Sequence record: NC_074634.1
Length of the DNA stretch: 26,097 nucleotides
Direction: 5' to 3' (one strand)
The position numbers were made by a program, and so were the translations under genes. Of the stretch, positions 2,379 to 25,786 are shown in pieces; within the stretch, counting starts at the first letter, position 1, and every line of letters starts with the position of its first letter. The notes below the pieces were generated by a model that ran no database searches, was not told where the DNA came from, and saw nothing but the letters and a program-made list of their open reading frames with translations.

Positions 2379-3686
2379 GTGGCATCCCTAGAAGAATTTA
2401 AAAAACTCTTTGAAGAAAATTCTTTTATATTTAATCCAAGGGATGAAAATCGAATATTGTACTACATATTTAGGAATACCAATATCCCTGAAGAAAAGAA
2501 GGCTAATGCATTAAAGGCATGGAGACTTGGTAATGACAATCAGTACTTTGAAATGTATAAAGCGTTTACTGACGAAATAAAATTCATATCTAAAATCGTA
2601 AAATTTAAAGAGAAAGGCGGTGAAATTGTCGCTTACTTTCAAAATGGCTTTACTGGGCGTTTCGATCCAAGGATGTTGGCAGACAATCCGGATGACGCTT
2701 ACAATTTGATGCAATCCTACTTACTAGTTAAAATCAAAAAATCAACAGACAGTTGGGAAATTTACGACATTATCCCAGTTGAGCCTGCAAAAAATGTAGA
2801 TATTGCCAAGCAATTATTACAATTTGTTGAGGCTGAGCATGTAACATATTCAATTTTACTATATGCTTTTGGCTATGACGTTGAGAAGATGGATGCCAGT
2901 GATGTTTTCTATACAATCCCGAGATTTTTCCCACTTTTTGTTTCTCCATATTCAAAAAGGCGTTATAACGTTATCGAAATTTCAAACCCTGGGACTGGAA
3001 AAACTTCAGTTTTTACAATTTTACAAGAAGTTTTTAATTTTCGATATTATACTGAACCGCCAACTTATGCCAATTTGGTGTATGATGCAAGAAATAATGT
3101 ATTCGGTGCGGTTTATTTGGCAAAAGGGCTAATCTTTGATGAAATTCAAACTTGGAAAAATAGCACAAATCAGAAAAATATGGAAGCTATAAATTCAACA
3201 TTATCGACAGGAATTGAAAATTGCATTTGGACAAGGGGTGCAGGAACAGAAAGTAAATCTGCAGTCCTTCATAGATGCCTTCCAATAATATATGCGGGAA
3301 ATCCATTATTTTTGACATTAGATAGATTTGCATCCCCTGATGTTGAGGATTATTTGCAGAAGTACGAAATTTTTACTCCTGCAATATTGGATAGGATTCA
3401 TATCATCCAAGTTGGAATAAAGAAAACCTATGATCAAATTGGCAGTAGAAGAGTGCTTTATCCTTCGGTTTTAAAAGCTCTTATCGATATTTTGCAAGAA
3501 AAACTAAATCAACAATCCCATTTTGTTGATTGTCAAATTTTCACGTCAAGACGATATGAACAGGCTGTCGACATCCAATTGATGCTAAGGACTCTAGATC
3601 TCCAAAATGATGAAATTGAAAAGAACCAAGATGAATTTTGTGCAAAATTACAGCAATATATGCGATTTATGGGCCTTGGCGGGTGA
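2379..3686 (+). CDS. AAA+ ATPase (SIRV2 gp18/ORF436-like; MCM/BrxL-type ATPase domain)
   Basis: Walker A SNPGTGKTS, Walker B LIFDEIQ, downstream TRG and LDR (arginine-finger-like) motifs. Lies between the SSB and Cas4 genes. GTG start. Confidence 0.88.
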   Translation: MASLEEFKKLFEENSFIFNPRDENRILYYIFRNTNIPEEKKANALKAWRLGNDNQYFEMYKAFTDEIKFISKIVKFKEKGGEIVAYFQNGFTGRFDPRMLADNPDDAYNLMQSYLLVKIKKSTDSWEIYDIIPVEPAKNVDIAKQLLQFVEAEHVTYSILLYAFGYDVEKMDASDVFYTIPRFFPLFVSPYSKRRYNVIEISNPGTGKTSVFTILQEVFNFRYYTEPPTYANLVYDARNNVFGAVYLAKGLIFDEIQTWKNSTNQKNMEAINSTLSTGIENCIWTRGAGTESKSAVLHRCLPIIYAGNPLFLTLDRFASPDVEDYLQKYEIFTPAILDRIHIIQVGIKKTYDQIGSRRVLYPSVLKALIDILQEKLNQQSHFVDCQIFTSRRYEQAVDIQLMLRTLDLQNDEIEKNQDEFCAKLQQYMRFMGLGG

Positions 3687-3691
3687 GAAAA

Positions 3692-4318
3692 ATGGTTTAT
3701 GAAAATAAAATTAAAGAAAGCTTTAAGAAACTTTATCCAGAAAATATCCTTTATCCATCTGAAATTGCGTACTGCTTAAGAAAAACAATTTTGGCAAGAA
3801 GAATTCAACATATAAAAAATATTGGAAGTGAGGTCGCCGATTATGGGCTGGCAATCCATAATGATGTTGAGGCTTATTTTAAGGAGAAACTTGGTTGCGA
3901 AACTGAGAAAGCAATTGAATATGAGATTGAAGGTGTAAAAATTTCAGCAAGAGTAGATTTATTATGCGGAAGTGATCTACTTGAGTTAAAAACGGTTTCA
4001 CATTTTATCCGCCAGCCTTACCAAAATCACATTGTTCAAGTTTCGCTTTATTATCATATATTATCACAACTGAATTATAAAATTGATAATGTCTATCTTG
4101 TTTATATTAATAGACAAAATTATGATGTCCAAGAATTTAAAATTCAAAAAGATCAACTTGACCAGGGATTAAAAAGCGCAATTGAGTTTATAAGGAATTA
4201 CAAAAAATACAAAGATGAACAAAACATATTCAAAATTCCAATTGGGGATACAACATTTTGTAGGAGTTGCGAATTTAGGAATATTTGCTATGGGACAATA
4301 ACAAATTTCCTTAAATGA
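3692..4318 (+). CDS. Cas4-like RecB-family nuclease with predicted 4Fe-4S cluster (SIRV2 gp19-like)
   Basis: YPSEIAYCLRK (Cys1), RVDLL..ELKT (D..ExK), QVSLY and CRSCEFRNIC (three Cys). Start moved to ATG 3692 after GGTGA. Confidence 0.92.
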   Translation: MVYENKIKESFKKLYPENILYPSEIAYCLRKTILARRIQHIKNIGSEVADYGLAIHNDVEAYFKEKLGCETEKAIEYEIEGVKISARVDLLCGSDLLELKTVSHFIRQPYQNHIVQVSLYYHILSQLNYKIDNVYLVYINRQNYDVQEFKIQKDQLDQGLKSAIEFIRNYKKYKDEQNIFKIPIGDTTFCRSCEFRNICYGTITNFLK

Positions 4319-4674
4319 TTGCGCTATGCTTTTAAACCAATTATCGCAAAAAAATACCAGAGGTAGCCAACAGTATCGATAATTTATTTATTATTATTAA
4401 AAAAAATAAATAAAAAGTTATGAAATAAATACTTATGCATATTATATATTTTAAATTTGCATAACATATAGTTTATATTTTATATCTTAAACTATGCATG
4501 CTCATTTTAAGATAATTAGTTTAAGATTTACATTTTAAAATGATGCGATCCCACTTGGTATATATTTTTCTTTTCGTATTACTGTGATAAAATTGGATGC
4601 GTATTAGTGTATGATTCTCTGGATCACTCTAGATATGCTATGCTTTTAATCTGGTCATTATTAAGTATATTATT
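4319..4674. other. Long AT-rich non-coding region containing inverted repeats
   Basis: No ORF of 60 aa or more. TTTATTTATT (4383-4392) pairs with AATAAATAAA (4405-4414), and CATTTTAAAATG (4531-4542) is a perfect palindrome. Confidence 0.55.
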
Positions 4675-20632: not shown

Positions 20633-21886
20633 TCACTCTGGCGGTATTTCTTTAAATATTTCATCAAGTTGCACACCTTGCATTTTTCTAATGACGTATG
20701 TCAGTATTCCAACAATTGGCGGTATAAATATCGTTGCAATATCAAAATATAGATTTCCAGTAAACATTTCTGACCTAAATTGTAAATTTGTAAATGAAGA
20801 ATATAAAACCATAGTTGCACTAAAGACCAACACGATTGCAGACAATACCGCAGTCGGCAAAATTCTTCTATCTTCCTTTACAAATTTCAAACTTGCAAAT
20901 GCAACAATTAGATAATTCCAAAATATAAACCATAGGTCATCAACAATCAAACTAACGTGAAAGCCCAGATAATTTTCTACAAAGTTGAAAATTTCTGCAA
21001 TTCCAAAACTAAGTAAAATTGAATTTGTTGGCGTTCCGCCTTTAACATTTGCTAAGAAAGCGGGCAAGACTCTATCAAACGATAGCGCAAACATGACTCT
21101 AGTTGTCGCCCCTGCATTTATCATAGCATATAGCAAATACCATGTTAATGCAGATAATGCAACAATTTCTAATTCTAGATTTACGCCGACTATAACTATT
21201 AAAATTGCAAATATCGCAGTAACGGTATATGCAATAAAATATCCTGCAAGTAAGCTTTTGCCAATTTTTTGCATTTCTCCCGCAAAATATGATGGGGAAT
21301 TTATAAATGCGTAAAGCATCATTACAAAAAGCGCAGTCATAGTGAGAGTATTTGTATTTATCTCAAGTTGTGTAGGTAAAACTGCATGATTTAAATTAGT
21401 CACAATCATAATTATAATACCAAGAATCTGAAATGCCACTAATGCGACAACTGCTTTCGCATAATATTTCACTTTTGACGCTAACAAATAGATTATTCCA
21501 ATATAAACTGTCGTAATTAAGAAAAGATCTAAATTTGACAAATTAAATCGCATAAATTCTAAAGACGCTAGGACTGGCATAGACAACCAAAATGATGTTA
21601 GGACCGCCATACCGCTAATTGTCCCTACAATTCCTCCAAAAGCTCTTGCAACATAAACATAATCTCCAGTAGACCTTGGGATTATTCTGTTCAACAAATA
21701 GTAGTTTAGCATTAGTGGAATACCTAAAATTGTCGCTAAAAGAATTGATAAAAACGCGTTAGCGTGAATGAGAAATAAAACGTAGGAAACTGCCCCCGCA
21801 GGTCCTAAAAAAGCGAAATTTAAGGAAAAAACATCTATTGGCTTAAATTCCTTTATTAACCCAGTTGACTGCCTTAAGAATTTCAT
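20633..21886 (-). CDS. APC-superfamily amino acid/polyamine permease (about 11-12 TM)
   Basis: FLRQSTGLIKEF..FSLNFAFLGP, PRSTGDYVYVARAFG and RVMFALSFDRVLPAFLANV are APC signatures; multiple hydrophobic segments. Confidence 0.9.
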   Translation of the reverse strand: MKFLRQSTGLIKEFKPIDVFSLNFAFLGPAGAVSYVLFLIHANAFLSILLATILGIPLMLNYYLLNRIIPRSTGDYVYVARAFGGIVGTISGMAVLTSFWLSMPVLASLEFMRFNLSNLDLFLITTVYIGIIYLLASKVKYYAKAVVALVAFQILGIIIMIVTNLNHAVLPTQLEINTNTLTMTALFVMMLYAFINSPSYFAGEMQKIGKSLLAGYFIAYTVTAIFAILIVIVGVNLELEIVALSALTWYLLYAMINAGATTRVMFALSFDRVLPAFLANVKGGTPTNSILLSFGIAEIFNFVENYLGFHVSLIVDDLWFIFWNYLIVAFASLKFVKEDRRILPTAVLSAIVLVFSATMVLYSSFTNLQFRSEMFTGNLYFDIATIFIPPIVGILTYVIRKMQGVQLDEIFKEIPPE

Positions 21887-21904
21887 ACCAATTTAACCAA
21901 CCGC

Positions 21905-21921
21905 TGACTACATTTTTAAAT
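21905..21921 (-). promoter_or_regulatory. Conserved TATA-GTC promoter for the permease operon, overlapping the tfb stop codon
   Basis: - strand reads ATTTAAAAATGTAGTCA, about 30 nt upstream of ATG 21886. Confidence 0.65.
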
Positions 21922-22720
21922 TTAAAATTTTTGCATTTTTCCTAAGCCCCGCCCCAGTGACCCCGCATTTTTCTTCAATCATTGGCTGGGTTATAAGGTA
22001 TCCACTTTGTTTAGCTAAATAATATAAAATTGTACATGCAACAGTTTTTGGATTTTTACCCTGGGCTTCAATTTCTTTTGCAATATTAAGCGCTTTTTCA
22101 ATTATCTCAATTGGCAATTCCAGCCTCACTCCACATTCTTTTATATAATCTTCAATTATAAATCGTGGTATTTTTTCATCAAATTCTTTTAATATCCTAA
22201 AATACATACTAACAAATTCCTTTTTTGGGATTCCGAATAATTCATCAACTTTTTTATAATATTCATCAAATGGCATTATAATTTTCAATTTCCTATAAGC
22301 TAAATAAATAGAAACCAAAACAATAATTTCATATCCTAGATATCTTAAATGTTTATTTTTCCATAGCTTTTGTAAAATTCTACCTGCCTCTTGTTTTATT
22401 GCATCATTAGCATTCAATTTTTCAACTGTAGATGATAAAAATCTTAAAGCATGCACTAAAATTCTCTTATTATTTGAATAAATTGCACATTTTTTCATCT
22501 TTTTTGGTTTAATTGCAGTCGTTGGTAGGAAACCTGAATTAACGAAATTGTTTGGGTTTATTGCTTTAGCTCTTGCCCTATCTTCAAACTGCTCAACATT
22601 ATAAGCCCTCCAATCAATACCTTCATCTACAACTCTATCTTCTAGAACTTCTCCAGTTTCAGTGCAAATATATTCGCCTCTCTCTGCATCAAATATGATC
22701 TTATCAGGAGGACAGCTCAT
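21908..22720 (-). CDS. tfb: Transcription initiation factor B homologue
   Basis: N-terminal CPPDKIIFDAERGEYICTETGEVLED..DWRAY closely matches the Sulfolobales TFB1 ribbon/B-reader as recalled; two degenerate cyclin repeats follow. Confidence 0.92.
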   Translation of the reverse strand: MSCPPDKIIFDAERGEYICTETGEVLEDRVVDEGIDWRAYNVEQFEDRARAKAINPNNFVNSGFLPTTAIKPKKMKKCAIYSNNKRILVHALRFLSSTVEKLNANDAIKQEAGRILQKLWKNKHLRYLGYEIIVLVSIYLAYRKLKIIMPFDEYYKKVDELFGIPKKEFVSMYFRILKEFDEKIPRFIIEDYIKECGVRLELPIEIIEKALNIAKEIEAQGKNPKTVACTILYYLAKQSGYLITQPMIEEKCGVTGAGLRKNAKILNLKM

Positions 22721-22828: not shown

Positions 22829-22883
22829 GTAGAAATAGTATATCAAATGTGAGAAAAATTAACCATAAAAAAAGAGAATTAAC
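22829..22883 (-). repeat. Cassette-boundary repeat R3
   Basis: - strand reads GTTAATTCTCTTTTTTTATGGTTAATTTTTCTCACATTTGATATACTATTTCTAC, starting at the stop codon of the 74-aa ORF. Confidence 0.8.
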
Positions 22884-23103
22884 CGACAATTTGACCCAAA
22901 ATTGGCTCAAGCCATGGTGGAAAGAATAAATGGCAACTGCCATCACTGCACGAATGGCAAGTATCAACATCAATAACGATAATTATTGGCAAAACTCCTG
23001 GATATTTTCTTGAAAATCTCTCAGCCTTTTCTTGGACATAACCGCTTTGAGATTTCAACCATTCTTTGTATTCTTTTTCATCTTTAAATTTTAGAACTTT
23101 CAT
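22879..23103 (-). CDS. Hypothetical protein (74 aa) with a CxxCxxxxCH cluster
   Basis: TCHSCSDGSCH may bind metal. RBS GGTGA upstream. Confidence 0.7.
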   Translation of the reverse strand: MKVLKFKDEKEYKEWLKSQSGYVQEKAERFSRKYPGVLPIIIVIDVDTCHSCSDGSCHLFFPPWLEPILGQIVG

Positions 23104-23112
23104 ACCTTAGCA

Positions 23113-23256
23113 TCACCCATATACGGCTTCTAGGTACCAAAGTAAAGCCTCACATTCATCTTCTGGCAAACTTGCCTCCTCCAAAGCGACAATAGTGTCT
23201 GGGCTATATCCCTCCAAGCCATATCCCTTTTGCTTTAAAAGCTCTAGGCAGTTCAT
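23113..23256 (-). CDS. Small acidic protein (47 aa), absent from the ORF track
   Basis: Reads MNCLELLKQKGYGLEGYSPDTIVALEEASLPEDECEALLWYLEAVYG*. GGTGAG lies 6 nt upstream, its own TGA forms the GGTGA RBS of the next gene, and it fills the gap almost exactly. Confidence 0.75.
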   Translation of the reverse strand: MNCLELLKQKGYGLEGYSPDTIVALEEASLPEDECEALLWYLEAVYG

Positions 23257-23263
23257 TGACAAC

Positions 23264-23599
23264 TCACCTTATTCTTAAGATGTAATAAAGATCATAACCA
23301 ATTTTATTCAACTCTTCTTCAGTTTGGATTACTTGTCCTTCCTCTAACCTTCTCTTCAATACAAATGCAATTGCGTTATCTCCAGGTTTGAAATAAATTG
23401 CAATCCTGCTTGTCTGAACTGGAATTCCCAATAAATTCGATAAAATGTTAGCAGTCGCACTGTGACCGATAGCACTTACAATATTTCCGGCATTATTTAC
23501 GATATCTCTTGCCTCCTTAAAATTTATCTTTTTTATTTGAAATTCTGCTTCCTGCCCTTCAAACGGGACAATTAGGCTATTTAGGAGATACAAGACCAT
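23264..23599 (-). CDS. acrIII-1: AcrIII-1 ring nuclease (DUF1874; cA4-degrading anti-CRISPR)
   Basis: LYLLNSLIVP, SAIGHSATA (catalytic His), SRI and KRRLEEGQV match the DUF1874 / SIRV1 gp29 / STIV B116 family. RBS GGTGAG before ATG 23599. Confidence 0.95.
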   Translation of the reverse strand: MVLYLLNSLIVPFEGQEAEFQIKKINFKEARDIVNNAGNIVSAIGHSATANILSNLLGIPVQTSRIAIYFKPGDNAIAFVLKRRLEEGQVIQTEEELNKIGYDLYYILRIR

Positions 23600-23619: not shown

Positions 23620-23644
23620 CTTGATGACAACATTTTTAAATCTT
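23620..23644 (-). promoter_or_regulatory. acrIII-1 promoter, identical to 1252-1276
   Basis: 25/25 match AAGATTTAAAAATGTTGTCATCAAG. Confidence 0.85.
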
Positions 23645-23648
23645 TAAA

Positions 23649-24491
23649 TCATATAACTCTACAAAATTGCTTTTTCTTACATTCTTCAATTATATCTTCA
23701 AATTTAATATTATCTATTTCATTCGTAAATCCATAATCTTGTAAAATTACTTTATACATATTATCTCCAACAACAAATTCGGAAACTTTATAGAACCATG
23801 CCTTATGCCTGTCAGCATCTAGTTCTAATGCCAACCACCCAATATTTGCCTCCCTCCTACCGTACCAGTAAACTTCTTGCCTACCTCTTGGAATAAATAC
23901 TGCCTTCTCTTTAAGCTTATTGTATAAATCCAAATCTTGATATTCAAAAATGTAAAGACCATGACCTAGAATTCTCCAGTAAATTTCCCATAACGCAAAA
24001 TGATCAATTATATCTGGTAATGACAATATGTTGAAATTACCAATATTGACGACATAAGGATGTGCAATTCCAAATTTTTCAGCAGGAGTTAACTTAGTTG
24101 CTAAATCATTTGCAAAGACTTTATTTAATCTTGTAGTATCCACAGTGTAATAATTATAAAGTATAAGATTATTATTGGAAATTATACCATGAATTGCTAA
24201 TTTATCAAATTTCCATAAAATGTACTCTGTCGCAATCATATCTTGAATTGATGGGGCATCTGGACCTCTTGGGTGGGTATGCAAAATGGCGTGAACAGTT
24301 TCTGGCATGTACTTTTGCAAAGGACTGAGATCTGCACTGCCTTTGTCACCCTGATAATAATCGCTAAACCACTCGCCTAAAACAATTAAATATTCTCTAT
24401 CTGTGGTTTTTGACTTTTGATAAACATCTTTCAAAAAATCTAGGTTTTTAAAAATAGTAAGAACATTATTTCTAACTTTCGATCTGGACAT
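23649..24491 (-). CDS. JAB/MPN+ (JAMM) domain protein with an unknown C-terminal domain (280 aa)
   Basis: Upstream Glu (REY) followed by HTHPRGPDAPSIQD, an exact H-x-H-x7-S-x2-D motif (nt 24240-24281). Confidence 0.8.
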   Translation of the reverse strand: MSRSKVRNNVLTIFKNLDFLKDVYQKSKTTDREYLIVLGEWFSDYYQGDKGSADLSPLQKYMPETVHAILHTHPRGPDAPSIQDMIATEYILWKFDKLAIHGIISNNNLILYNYYTVDTTRLNKVFANDLATKLTPAEKFGIAHPYVVNIGNFNILSLPDIIDHFALWEIYWRILGHGLYIFEYQDLDLYNKLKEKAVFIPRGRQEVYWYGRREANIGWLALELDADRHKAWFYKVSEFVVGDNMYKVILQDYGFTNEIDNIKFEDIIEECKKKQFCRVI

Positions 24492-24556
24492 ATAGCATCA
24501 ATATATTAAGAAGTGATAACATTTATCAAGATTTCACAGAAAATAAGGAGTAGTTG

Positions 24557-24600
24557 TAATAATATCTGGAAAGTGAAAAAAATCAACCAAAAAAATAGAT
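24557..24600 (-). repeat. Degenerate cassette-boundary repeat R5
   Basis: - strand ATCTATTTTTTTGGTTGATTTTTTTCACTTTCCAGATATTATTA aligns with R1, including the CAGATA segment. Confidence 0.6.
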
Positions 24601-24663: not shown

Positions 24664-25188
24664 TCAATAATGTGTGTAATAAATAAGTGCATCAAGAGCA
24701 ATAATGTCCTTACCGTCTAAAATGTCCTTCAACATTTTCTGCAACCCCTGCGGTATGCTAAACTCAACATGTTCCCCGTTCCTCAAATACTGGATTTTAG
24801 CAATCCCATTGTTATATGTTACCTCAACATTTTCAATCTGGATATAATCGATAACTTCTCCGCCAGGTATGTCAGTGTATTCTGGAACAGCACAAATTGC
24901 AATGTTATCGTTCCTTGTTTTTAAGAGAGCTATTTTCCCAACGATTGCAATTCTACCAAGTTTACTCACTGCAACAGAATAGTAGAAACCCCCTAGCTTA
25001 TATAGTACATATGACGGCACCATTGTATCTTCAAAGCCTGGCACCAAAAACTTTATGTAAACCAATTTTTTGAACTGAACTTGTTGCTCTTCTACTTGAG
25101 TTTGAATTTGACCTTGGCTTAACTCTTGATTTTCCATTTGGTTTGACTCTTGAGTTTTAACTTGATTTATCTCTTCTTCTTCGCTCAT
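24664..25188 (-). CDS. Hypothetical protein (174 aa) with a Q/E-rich disordered N-terminus
   Basis: RBS GGTGA and an upstream AGAAAGATTTAAATA BRE/TATA. Confidence 0.8.
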   Translation of the reverse strand: MSEEEEINQVKTQESNQMENQELSQGQIQTQVEEQQVQFKKLVYIKFLVPGFEDTMVPSYVLYKLGGFYYSVAVSKLGRIAIVGKIALLKTRNDNIAICAVPEYTDIPGGEVIDYIQIENVEVTYNNGIAKIQYLRNGEHVEFSIPQGLQKMLKDILDGKDIIALDALIYYTHY

Positions 25189-25657: not shown

Positions 25658-25695
25658 TAGAAATATTATTATAAAAGTGAGAAAAATTAGGCATA
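25658..25695 (-). repeat. Cassette-boundary repeat R4
   Basis: - strand TATGCCTAATTTTTCTCACTTTTATAATAATATTTCTA matches R2 at 36/38 nt. Confidence 0.85.
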
Positions 25696-25786
25696 GAATT
25701 AGCTAAAGAATAAGGTTAAAAAATAAAAATAAAAATAGAAACGCAAAAAATTAGAAGGAATAGAAAATAAAAACAGGAAAAAATGA

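Follow-up and report, generated by a model that had tools for sequence, protein, structure and literature searches.

A candidate JAMM/MPN+ metalloprotease encoded beside AcrIII-1 in the rudivirus SSRV1, with removal of Urm1 as a tentative function

JAMM enzymes characterized to date cleave behind the C-terminal end of a ubiquitin-like protein (Ubl) or of a conjugated tail. The eukaryotic representatives AMSH, AMSH-LP, Sst2, and STAMBPL1 are deubiquitinases specific for K63-linked ubiquitin. The viral deconjugases so far known to us are cysteine proteases. The account of eukaryotic-virus deconjugases in PMC7464072 names JAMM solely as a class of cellular deconjugase, with phages and archaeal viruses unmentioned. 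From end to end, the DNA analyzed here (26,097 bp, hereafter the window) is the same as MN876841/NC_074634, which represents the whole linear genome of Saccharolobus solfataricus rod-shaped virus 1 (SSRV1; Rudiviridae, Hoswirudivirus), a virus from an acidic hot spring in Italy. Its minus strand carries SSRV1_gp34 (ORF34-280; 23649..24491), an intact open reading frame (ORF) of 280 residues whose record label is 'hypothetical protein' and whose start codon position is common to its homologs. Judged from its sequence, gp34 is a very divergent JAMM/MPN-type protease candidate, and it may act on the ubiquitin-like protein Urm1. The gene is accessory, lies in the variable right arm of the SSRV1 genome, and is not part of the core machinery of replication or assembly.

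The domain call on gp34 has already been published in passing and is not new. Baquero et al. (2020, bioRxiv 10.1101/2020.01.16.907410) list a 'putative metal-dependent deubiquitinase' among the genes exclusive to Italian rudiviruses, which is equated with gp34 here because the gp34 motif is the sole JAMM motif in the genome. Homologs in ARV2 and ATV are likewise labeled 'protease' or 'putative metal-dependent protease' in RefSeq and GenBank, and the novelty implied by a preliminary description of this locus, made from the DNA letters alone, is not supported. The literature yielded no functional study of the gp34 family, and no phage or archaeal-virus JAB protein described as a counter-defense deconjugase. 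New here are the family-wide invariance of the catalytic set, the fold evidence, the narrowness of the family, a four-gene block collinear with Acidianus two-tailed virus (ATV), the splitting of the gene by an insertion sequence (IS) in ATV, and a reinterpretation of the flanking repeats.

The stretch HTHPRGPDAPSIQD in gp34 (codons 24240..24281, minus strand) has the form H71-T-H73-P-x6-S81-x2-D84 and supplies the candidate zinc ligands H71, H73, and D84 together with S81. The candidate catalytic Glu, E33 (general base; codon 24393..24395, minus strand), lies upstream. A six-frame translation of the whole genome contains the pattern H.H.{7}S..D once, as against 0.075 occurrences per shuffled genome. 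Conservation was assessed in an alignment of all six family members, which are 38–82% identical to gp34. Residues E33, Y34, L35, I36, H71, T72, H73, P74, G76, P77, P80, S81, and D84 are invariant in 6/6, and the complete motif of the JAMM/MPN+ superfamily, E...H-x-H-x7-S-x2-D, is present in each member. The preliminary description was thus right to place an intact JAMM motif in the N-terminal half. The other candidate Glu, E40, is unconserved, which together with the invariance of E33 identifies the latter as the catalytic candidate. In an AlphaFold2 model of gp34, E33 follows helix 17–30 and stands at the start of strand 34–39.

This model was built from five sequences and has a predicted local distance difference test score (pLDDT) of 75.9 and a predicted template-modeling score (pTM) of 0.79. 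Its N-terminal part (residues 1–118; 24138..24491, minus strand) comprises two helices within residues 3–30, strand 34–39 directly after E33, strand 66–72 ending in the HTH of the motif, a helix (82–94) that runs on from S81 and D84, and a hairpin (100–113). The order of these elements is that of a minimal MPN core, and the modeled MPN fold may reach as far as residue ~177. The top matches in a Foldseek search of the PDB are the JAMM deubiquitinases Sst2, AMSH, AMSH-LP, and STAMBPL1 (probability 0.87–0.99; E from 0.017; TM score 0.41; identity 10–16%; RMSD 6–7 Å), followed by the Jab1 domain of Prp8 and by CSN5. This is an MPN fold recovered at modest strength (E 0.017, TM 0.41), residues 43–61 being poorly modeled. 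Among viral models the strong matches are ARV2 and ATV ORF209 only, with small phage JAB proteins among the weaker ones. In this comparison, a kind of check that the preliminary description had proposed for the JAB subfamily and the C-terminal domain, JAMM deubiquitinases rank first at a probability of up to 0.99 (E 0.017, TM 0.41), and no confident match was returned for the C-terminal part.

Curated JAB models recognize the motif alone. Pfam Prok-JAB (PF14464) matches 6/6 family members below its curated cut-off (best E 1.5e-5), and gp34 itself at E 0.0095 over residues 64–92 (16.2 bits; curated cut-off 25). Among PHROGs, residues 55–280 match phrog_19077 ('protease') at 3.9e-90 and residues 7–55 match phrog_24075. 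Sequence searches of the PDB found nothing for gp34 alone, and the family profile retrieved one irrelevant 55-residue chain (E 0.43). Taken together, the motif, the sub-cut-off Prok-JAB matches in 6/6 members, and the JAMM deubiquitinases as best matches among solved structures make the JAMM/MPN+ type assignment of this putative metalloenzyme sound, as the preliminary description had supposed. Placement within a JAB subfamily did not succeed: hhalign comparison of the family with Escherichia coli YicR (RadC) and with phage lambda K aligns only the 26–29-residue motif, at probabilities of 18% and 12%, respectively.

The gene is under purifying selection, strongest in its catalytic half. The ratio of nonsynonymous to synonymous substitution rates (dN/dS) is 0.13–0.17 against the ARV2 copy and the copy assigned to 'S. 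metallicus', with values of 0.09 for residues 1–118 and 0.24 for the remainder. All family members have low isoelectric points (4.95–6.25) and are acidic in both halves, which by composition fits a protein substrate better than a nucleic acid.

The C-terminal part of gp34 (residues 119–280; 23652..24137, minus strand) is a family-specific α/β region, recognizable by its invariant columns: W168, Y171, W172, Y234, K235, and the pair C271/C277. The model is well defined in part of it (pLDDT 80–90 over residues 101–200). For residues ~120–280 there is no significant match in Pfam, among PDB sequences, or to any fold with confidence, and no relative outside the family among 1.84 billion representative proteins, in accordance with the large unknown C-terminal domain that had been described at the outset. 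Foldseek lists AcrID1 (6exp_B, probability 0.41), SIFV ORF14 (2h36, 0.44), and a 95-residue SIRV1 protein (Q5W338, 0.82) as weak matches of the gp34 model. None of the three was accepted as the identity of the C-terminal part, given probabilities of 0.4–0.8, TM scores of ≤0.41, and an aligned portion of gp34 that is not reported. The Cys-x5-Cys arrangement of C271 and C277 (23661–23681 of the window) is found in every family member, at the very end of the protein. This pair may form a stabilizing disulfide or a partial metal site; stabilizing disulfides are common in proteins of hyperthermophilic viruses.

The adjacent gene downstream, gp33 (23264..23599, minus strand), begins 40 nt from gp34 on the same strand and belongs to the DUF1874/AcrIII-1 family (viral ring nuclease, cyclic tetra-adenylate). 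It matches Pfam STIV_B116-like/DUF1874 at 1.3e-30 over essentially the full model (profile positions 1–100 of 101) and PADLOC Csx16 at 1.1e-18. The position of gp34 directly upstream of acrIII-1, noted in the preliminary description, is therefore correct. The His of a GHS sequence, the catalytic residue in SIRV1 gp29, is present in gp33. The name AcrIII-1 was given to gp33 in the SSRV1 description of Baquero et al.

The order gp34 (JAB), gp33 (DUF1874), gp32 (47 residues), gp31 (74 residues) is collinear with a block in ATV, which reads ORF82/ORF209 (JAB, 39% identity), ORF70 (F-112 winged helix), ORF117 (DUF1874, 52%), ORF48 (56%), ORF59a, ORF79 (57%). A DUF1874 gene adjoins or lies near the JAB gene in SSRV1, in ARV2, in two short contigs (L005 and L007), and in the unrelated ATV. 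Adjacency to this anti-CRISPR gene is thus conserved, the contexts being non-independent members of one collinear block. DUF1874 is also found in sets that lack JAB, as a trio with the 47- and 74-residue genes in ARV1 (2148–2870) and as a pair with the 47-residue gene in SMV4 (USA; 2145–2641). Owing to these JAB-less sets, the AcrIII-1 module is regarded as older and wider, with JAB as an optional upstream addition; JAB is exchanged as part of the block among viruses of one region.

A possible source of substrates for a JAMM enzyme in this setting is suggested by host biology. Urm1 is reported as the sole Ubl homolog in S. islandicus, where 330 proteins carry it, among them CdvA, CdvB1, CdvB2, and subunits of the proteasome, and where K37-linked Urm1 chains appear to trigger proteasomal degradation (PMC12625751). 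According to PMC13736083, breakdown of CdvB by the proteasome controls or drives cell division, and PMC9976892 gives the cell cycle as a known target of Sulfolobales viruses. Tentatively, and from sequence and model, removal of Urm1 by gp34 is the inference that requires the fewest assumptions. In the proposed mechanism, gp34 would work as a zinc-dependent JAMM/MPN+ peptidase, one of a small family confined to Sulfolobales viruses, with H71, H73, and D84 as zinc ligands, E33 as general base, and S81 stabilizing the intermediate. Substrate choice would probably be made by the family-specific C-terminal region. The enzyme would hydrolyze the (iso)peptide bond that follows Gly-Gly at the C-terminus of Urm1, taking Urm1 or Urm1 chains off viral or host proteins, so that proteasomal degradation directed by Urm1 would be dampened or processes under the control of urmylation would be rewired. 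What the analysis shows directly is the ORF, its conserved motif, purifying selection, an MPN-like fold, and the gene context; catalysis, Urm1 as the substrate, and a benefit to the virus go beyond this and are inferred. It is interesting to speculate further that no JAMM-type deconjugase encoded by a virus would have been described before gp34, nor a deconjugase of whatever class in an archaeal virus, and that by removing Urm1 or its chains gp34 would shield viral proteins from the Urm1–proteasome route or stabilize urmylated host proteins such as CdvB1 and CdvB2, which are ESCRT-III division proteins, and thereby keep the cell in conditions favorable to the virus. This fuller scenario is doubtful.

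Several points weigh against Urm1 removal. At the level of the protein, all sequence matches to JAB models are below cut-off and cover only the motif; no PDB match of the gp34 model reaches E ≤ 1e-3; and residues 43–61, the expected site of an MPN strand, have pLDDT values <50. Isopeptidases usually carry E-x-x-G-x-L-x-G after the catalytic Glu, from which gp34 differs, the strand following E33 being EYLIVLG. The HxHP-x6-PS-x2-D form is equally typical for RadC-like JABs, to which the family also has weak matches (see below). At the level of biology, we know of no Ubl-based antiviral system in Sulfolobales, the host carries JAMM enzymes of its own, and no recognizable Ubl, E1, or E2 is encoded in the SSRV1 genome. 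The linkage of JAB and AcrIII-1 may go back to a single transfer of the block or to a few, and guilt by association with AcrIII-1 is suggestive without being independent evidence.

The neighborhood can also be taken at face value. The JAMM enzyme would then be a targeted anti-defense protease with one particular host protein or a non-Ubl conjugate as its substrate, in the manner of CBASS Cap3 acting on a conjugated cyclase tail, with the C-terminal region as the targeting module and AcrIII-1 as its partner in one anti-defense block. Such a role would agree with the position of gp34 beside AcrIII-1 in five contexts from two virus families, and with its location in the variable terminal part of the genome, in which Baquero et al. 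anticipate candidate anti-CRISPR genes. The fold matches to AcrID1, SIFV ORF14, and the SIRV1 protein point the same way, but they are weak (TM 0.35–0.41) and the aligned part of gp34 is not reported. Nor is any type III CRISPR component known to be regulated by conjugation, and PADLOC returns no match for gp34. AcrIII-1 and the 47-residue gene occur without JAB in ARV1 and SMV4, and gp33 has a TATA-like element of its own, so co-transcription with gp34 is not needed. On this balance a targeted anti-defense protease appears unlikely. Were gp34 to cut a defense protein, it would represent a new enzymatic class of archaeal-virus anti-defense protein.

A second alternative, already raised in the preliminary description, is a RadC-like JAB acting on nucleic acid or nucleoprotein, for instance in anti-restriction or DNA processing, and not on Ubl conjugates. 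The motif HTHPRGPDAPSIQD does resemble HNHPSGCAEPSKAD of E. coli YicR (RadC) in the hhalign comparison, the structural matches include small phage JAB proteins, and weak RadC matches exist in Pfam (0.092, in 1/6 members) and NCBIfam (E 0.017–0.26), the latter database giving nothing for the family but these sub-threshold RadC matches. However, the NCBIfam scores (10.9–14.8 bits) are far under the cut-offs of 133–180, and the alignment with YicR spans 26 columns of the common motif at 18% probability, whereas RadC-like proteins are defined by a match across the entire JAB domain and by an N-terminal RadC region. Prok-JAB is matched by 6/6 members as against 1/6 for RadC; the top 50 PDB fold matches are isopeptidases and include no RadC structure; Pfam detects no DNA-binding domain in gp34; and the proteins are acidic throughout. 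Action on nucleic acid is accordingly considered improbable, and removal of Urm1 is retained as the tentatively preferred function.

The gp34 family is narrow. A profile search of the 1.84 billion representative proteins returned four clusters, all from Sulfolobales viruses: the SSRV1/ARV2 type, a 284-residue metagenomic protein, a 288-residue ATV-type protein, and the ATV ORF82 fragment. A word-index homolog search found 5 proteins, and a scan of viral contigs for gp34 relatives found ARV2 alone. Neither the GTDB species set of cellular genomes nor the 1.84 billion representatives contained a cellular homolog, and gp34 is therefore not a recent capture of a host enzyme. Cultured viruses with a family member are SSRV1, ARV2, and the ATV lineage only, all of them Italian; ARV1 and ARV3, both present in the searched database, have none, and neither do most rudiviruses. 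ARV2 gp38, annotated 'protease', is a true homolog at 82% identity, and ATV ORF82 plus ORF209 together form another at 39%; both share with gp34 the JAMM residues, the C-terminal region, and a DUF1874 neighbor. A further copy, 74% identical to gp34, lies on contig JAPNVC010000109.1 (1911 bp; contig L005 above) of the Sulfuracidifex metallicus assembly GCA_026627365.1, where JAB, DUF1874, and the 47-residue gene follow one another in rudiviral order. This contig is probably viral DNA, from infection or carry-over, and not a host gene.

ATV and ATV2 differ from SSRV1 in that an IS605 OrfB/TnpB gene (ORF409) interrupts the JAB gene near residue 55. The split is seen in ATV (NC_007409; 2437–4630), in ATV2 (2429–4633), and in an ATV variant. 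Of the two fragments, ORF82 retains the catalytic Glu together with the N-terminal helices, and the rest of the protein, lacking that Glu, is ORF209 (annotated 'protease'); the ATV2 homolog is annotated 'putative metal-dependent protease'. An uninterrupted ATV-type copy of 288 residues (P0006) is present in metagenome run SRR12124855. Since the IS element splits the gene, JAB is dispensable for growth of ATV under the conditions of isolation, which argues against a core role in maturation. A role as a protease in the maturation or assembly of a viral protein, as proposed for the JAB domain of the phage lambda tail protein K, is accordingly very improbable. The possible substrate would be gp35, a homolog of which again lies immediately upstream of the most divergent rudivirus-type JAB gene, but the JAB gene is missing from most rudiviruses, including ARV1 and ARV3, is split in two viable isolates, and has no gp35 homolog upstream in ARV2 or ATV, and the gp35 model is unusable. 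Least credible of all is the absence of any enzymatic role, with gp34 as an MPN scaffold without catalysis or as a gene in decay: disruption in the ATV lineage and the tiny size of the family would suit it, but the catalytic residues are all invariant, purifying selection is strong and peaks in the catalytic half, and intact copies persist in several divergent lineages, including P0006.

The gene upstream of gp34, gp35 (24664..25188, minus strand), encodes a protein of 174 residues with no assigned function, an acidic Gln-rich N-terminus, and a β-rich body; its structure model is unusable (pLDDT 42). It was considered as a possible Ubl or substrate. Its homolog is a 163-residue ORF (672–1163) in metagenomic contig L006, directly upstream of the JAB gene P0005 (30% identity, E 1e-14), which makes a second association of JAB, weaker than that with AcrIII-1; no other gp35 homolog was found, including upstream of JAB in ARV2 and ATV. 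Downstream of gp33, gp32 (23113..23256, minus strand; phrog_11751) is a 47-residue acidic companion of DUF1874, with tblastn matches in ARV2, ARV1, ATV, SMV3, SMV4, and ATSV. Genes of this type follow DUF1874/AcrIII-1 in SSRV1, ARV2, ATV, ARV1, and SMV4 (USA). The last gene of the block, gp31 (22879..23103, minus strand), encodes 74 residues with a conserved CxxC, is 57% identical to ATV ORF79, and also has homologs in ARV3 and ARV1; a gp31-type gene is next in the row in SSRV1, ATV, and ARV1. These two companions could be partners or regulators of AcrIII-1. Beyond the block, gp29 and gp30 (20633–22720 of the window) are unusual cargo for a rudivirus, and both are common to ARV2. This region encodes a multi-pass membrane protein of 417 residues, annotated as an amino-acid transporter and without Pfam match at E ≤ 1, and the TFIIB/TFB homolog gp30 (Zn ribbon 2.3e-09; TFIIB repeat 1.1e-06).

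The block is flanked by 41-nt repeats, one upstream of gp34 (24554..24594; core TAATTTTTCTCACTT in the gene direction) and another between gp31 and the TFB gene gp30 (22830..22870), with a third copy at 25658–25698. The 15-nt core occurs five times in the genome at ≤2 mismatches (481–495, 2252–2266, 22847–22861, 24571–24585, and 25675–25689). It is always intergenic, is mirrored on both arms, and, read in the direction of the motif, precedes the next start codon by ~65–130 nt. It is also kept in ARV2, with 4 matches against 0.15 expected. Given these three properties (intergenic, mirrored, and kept in ARV2), the 41-nt repeats are best read as boundary signals of transcription units, and the core is probably a regulator site or a terminator or promoter element of hoswirudiviruses. 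The preliminary description had gp34 within a repeat-bounded cassette with acrIII-1: repeats do flank gp34–gp31, but the third copy and the five-copy, genome-wide intergenic core led us to reject them as the ends of a mobile cassette. A separate 21-nt A/T-rich repeat, AAGATTTAAAAATGTTGTCAT, lies between gp34 and gp33 (23624..23644, minus strand); copies of this family (D2) precede gp29, gp33, and gp36. Because it resembles a TATA box, gp33 may have a promoter of its own.

Compared with known systems, gp34 shares with AMSH, AMSH-LP, Sst2, and STAMBPL1 a modeled arrangement of the E...HxH...S..D zinc site on an MPN core. It differs from this group in its shorter Glu-to-His spacing (38 residues) and unrelated C-terminal region, and the segment matching their ubiquitin-binding insertions is poorly modeled; gp34 is not placed in this subfamily. 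Prokaryotic JABs (PF14464), comprising CBASS Cap3, Bil-type, and other proteases of Ubl operons, have the same compact core and the HxHP...PSxxD form. Unlike Cap3 and Bil JABs, gp34 is a viral gene with no PADLOC match and no E1, E2, Ubl, or cyclase gene nearby; its neighbors are gp35, AcrIII-1, and two small proteins, not those of a defense operon. RadC-like JABs, such as E. coli YicR and its phage and plasmid paralogs, are common in mobile elements and share the motif form, whereas gp34 aligns with them over 26 residues only, lacks the N-terminal RadC region, and is acidic, not basic. Functional precedents are the archaeal JAMM/Rpn11-type desampylases and Urm1-processing enzymes (HvJAMM1, CsRpn11 (PMC6043591), and the Sulfolobales JAMM), in which a minimal JAMM removes SAMP, Urm1, or ubiquitin. 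This is the activity proposed for gp34, although no sequence relationship to them is detectable. If gp34 does remove Urm1, it would be a tool for studying urmylation in Sulfolobales and a way into its function there, Urm1 being attached to proteins of cell division and of the proteasome, and urmylation would become a virus-relevant, possibly antiviral, pathway in archaea. In concept, gp34 would then parallel the deconjugases of eukaryotic viruses (PMC7464072), in which a virus enzyme reverses host Ubl conjugation, and archaeal viruses would manipulate the ubiquitin-like/proteasome system as many eukaryotic viruses do.

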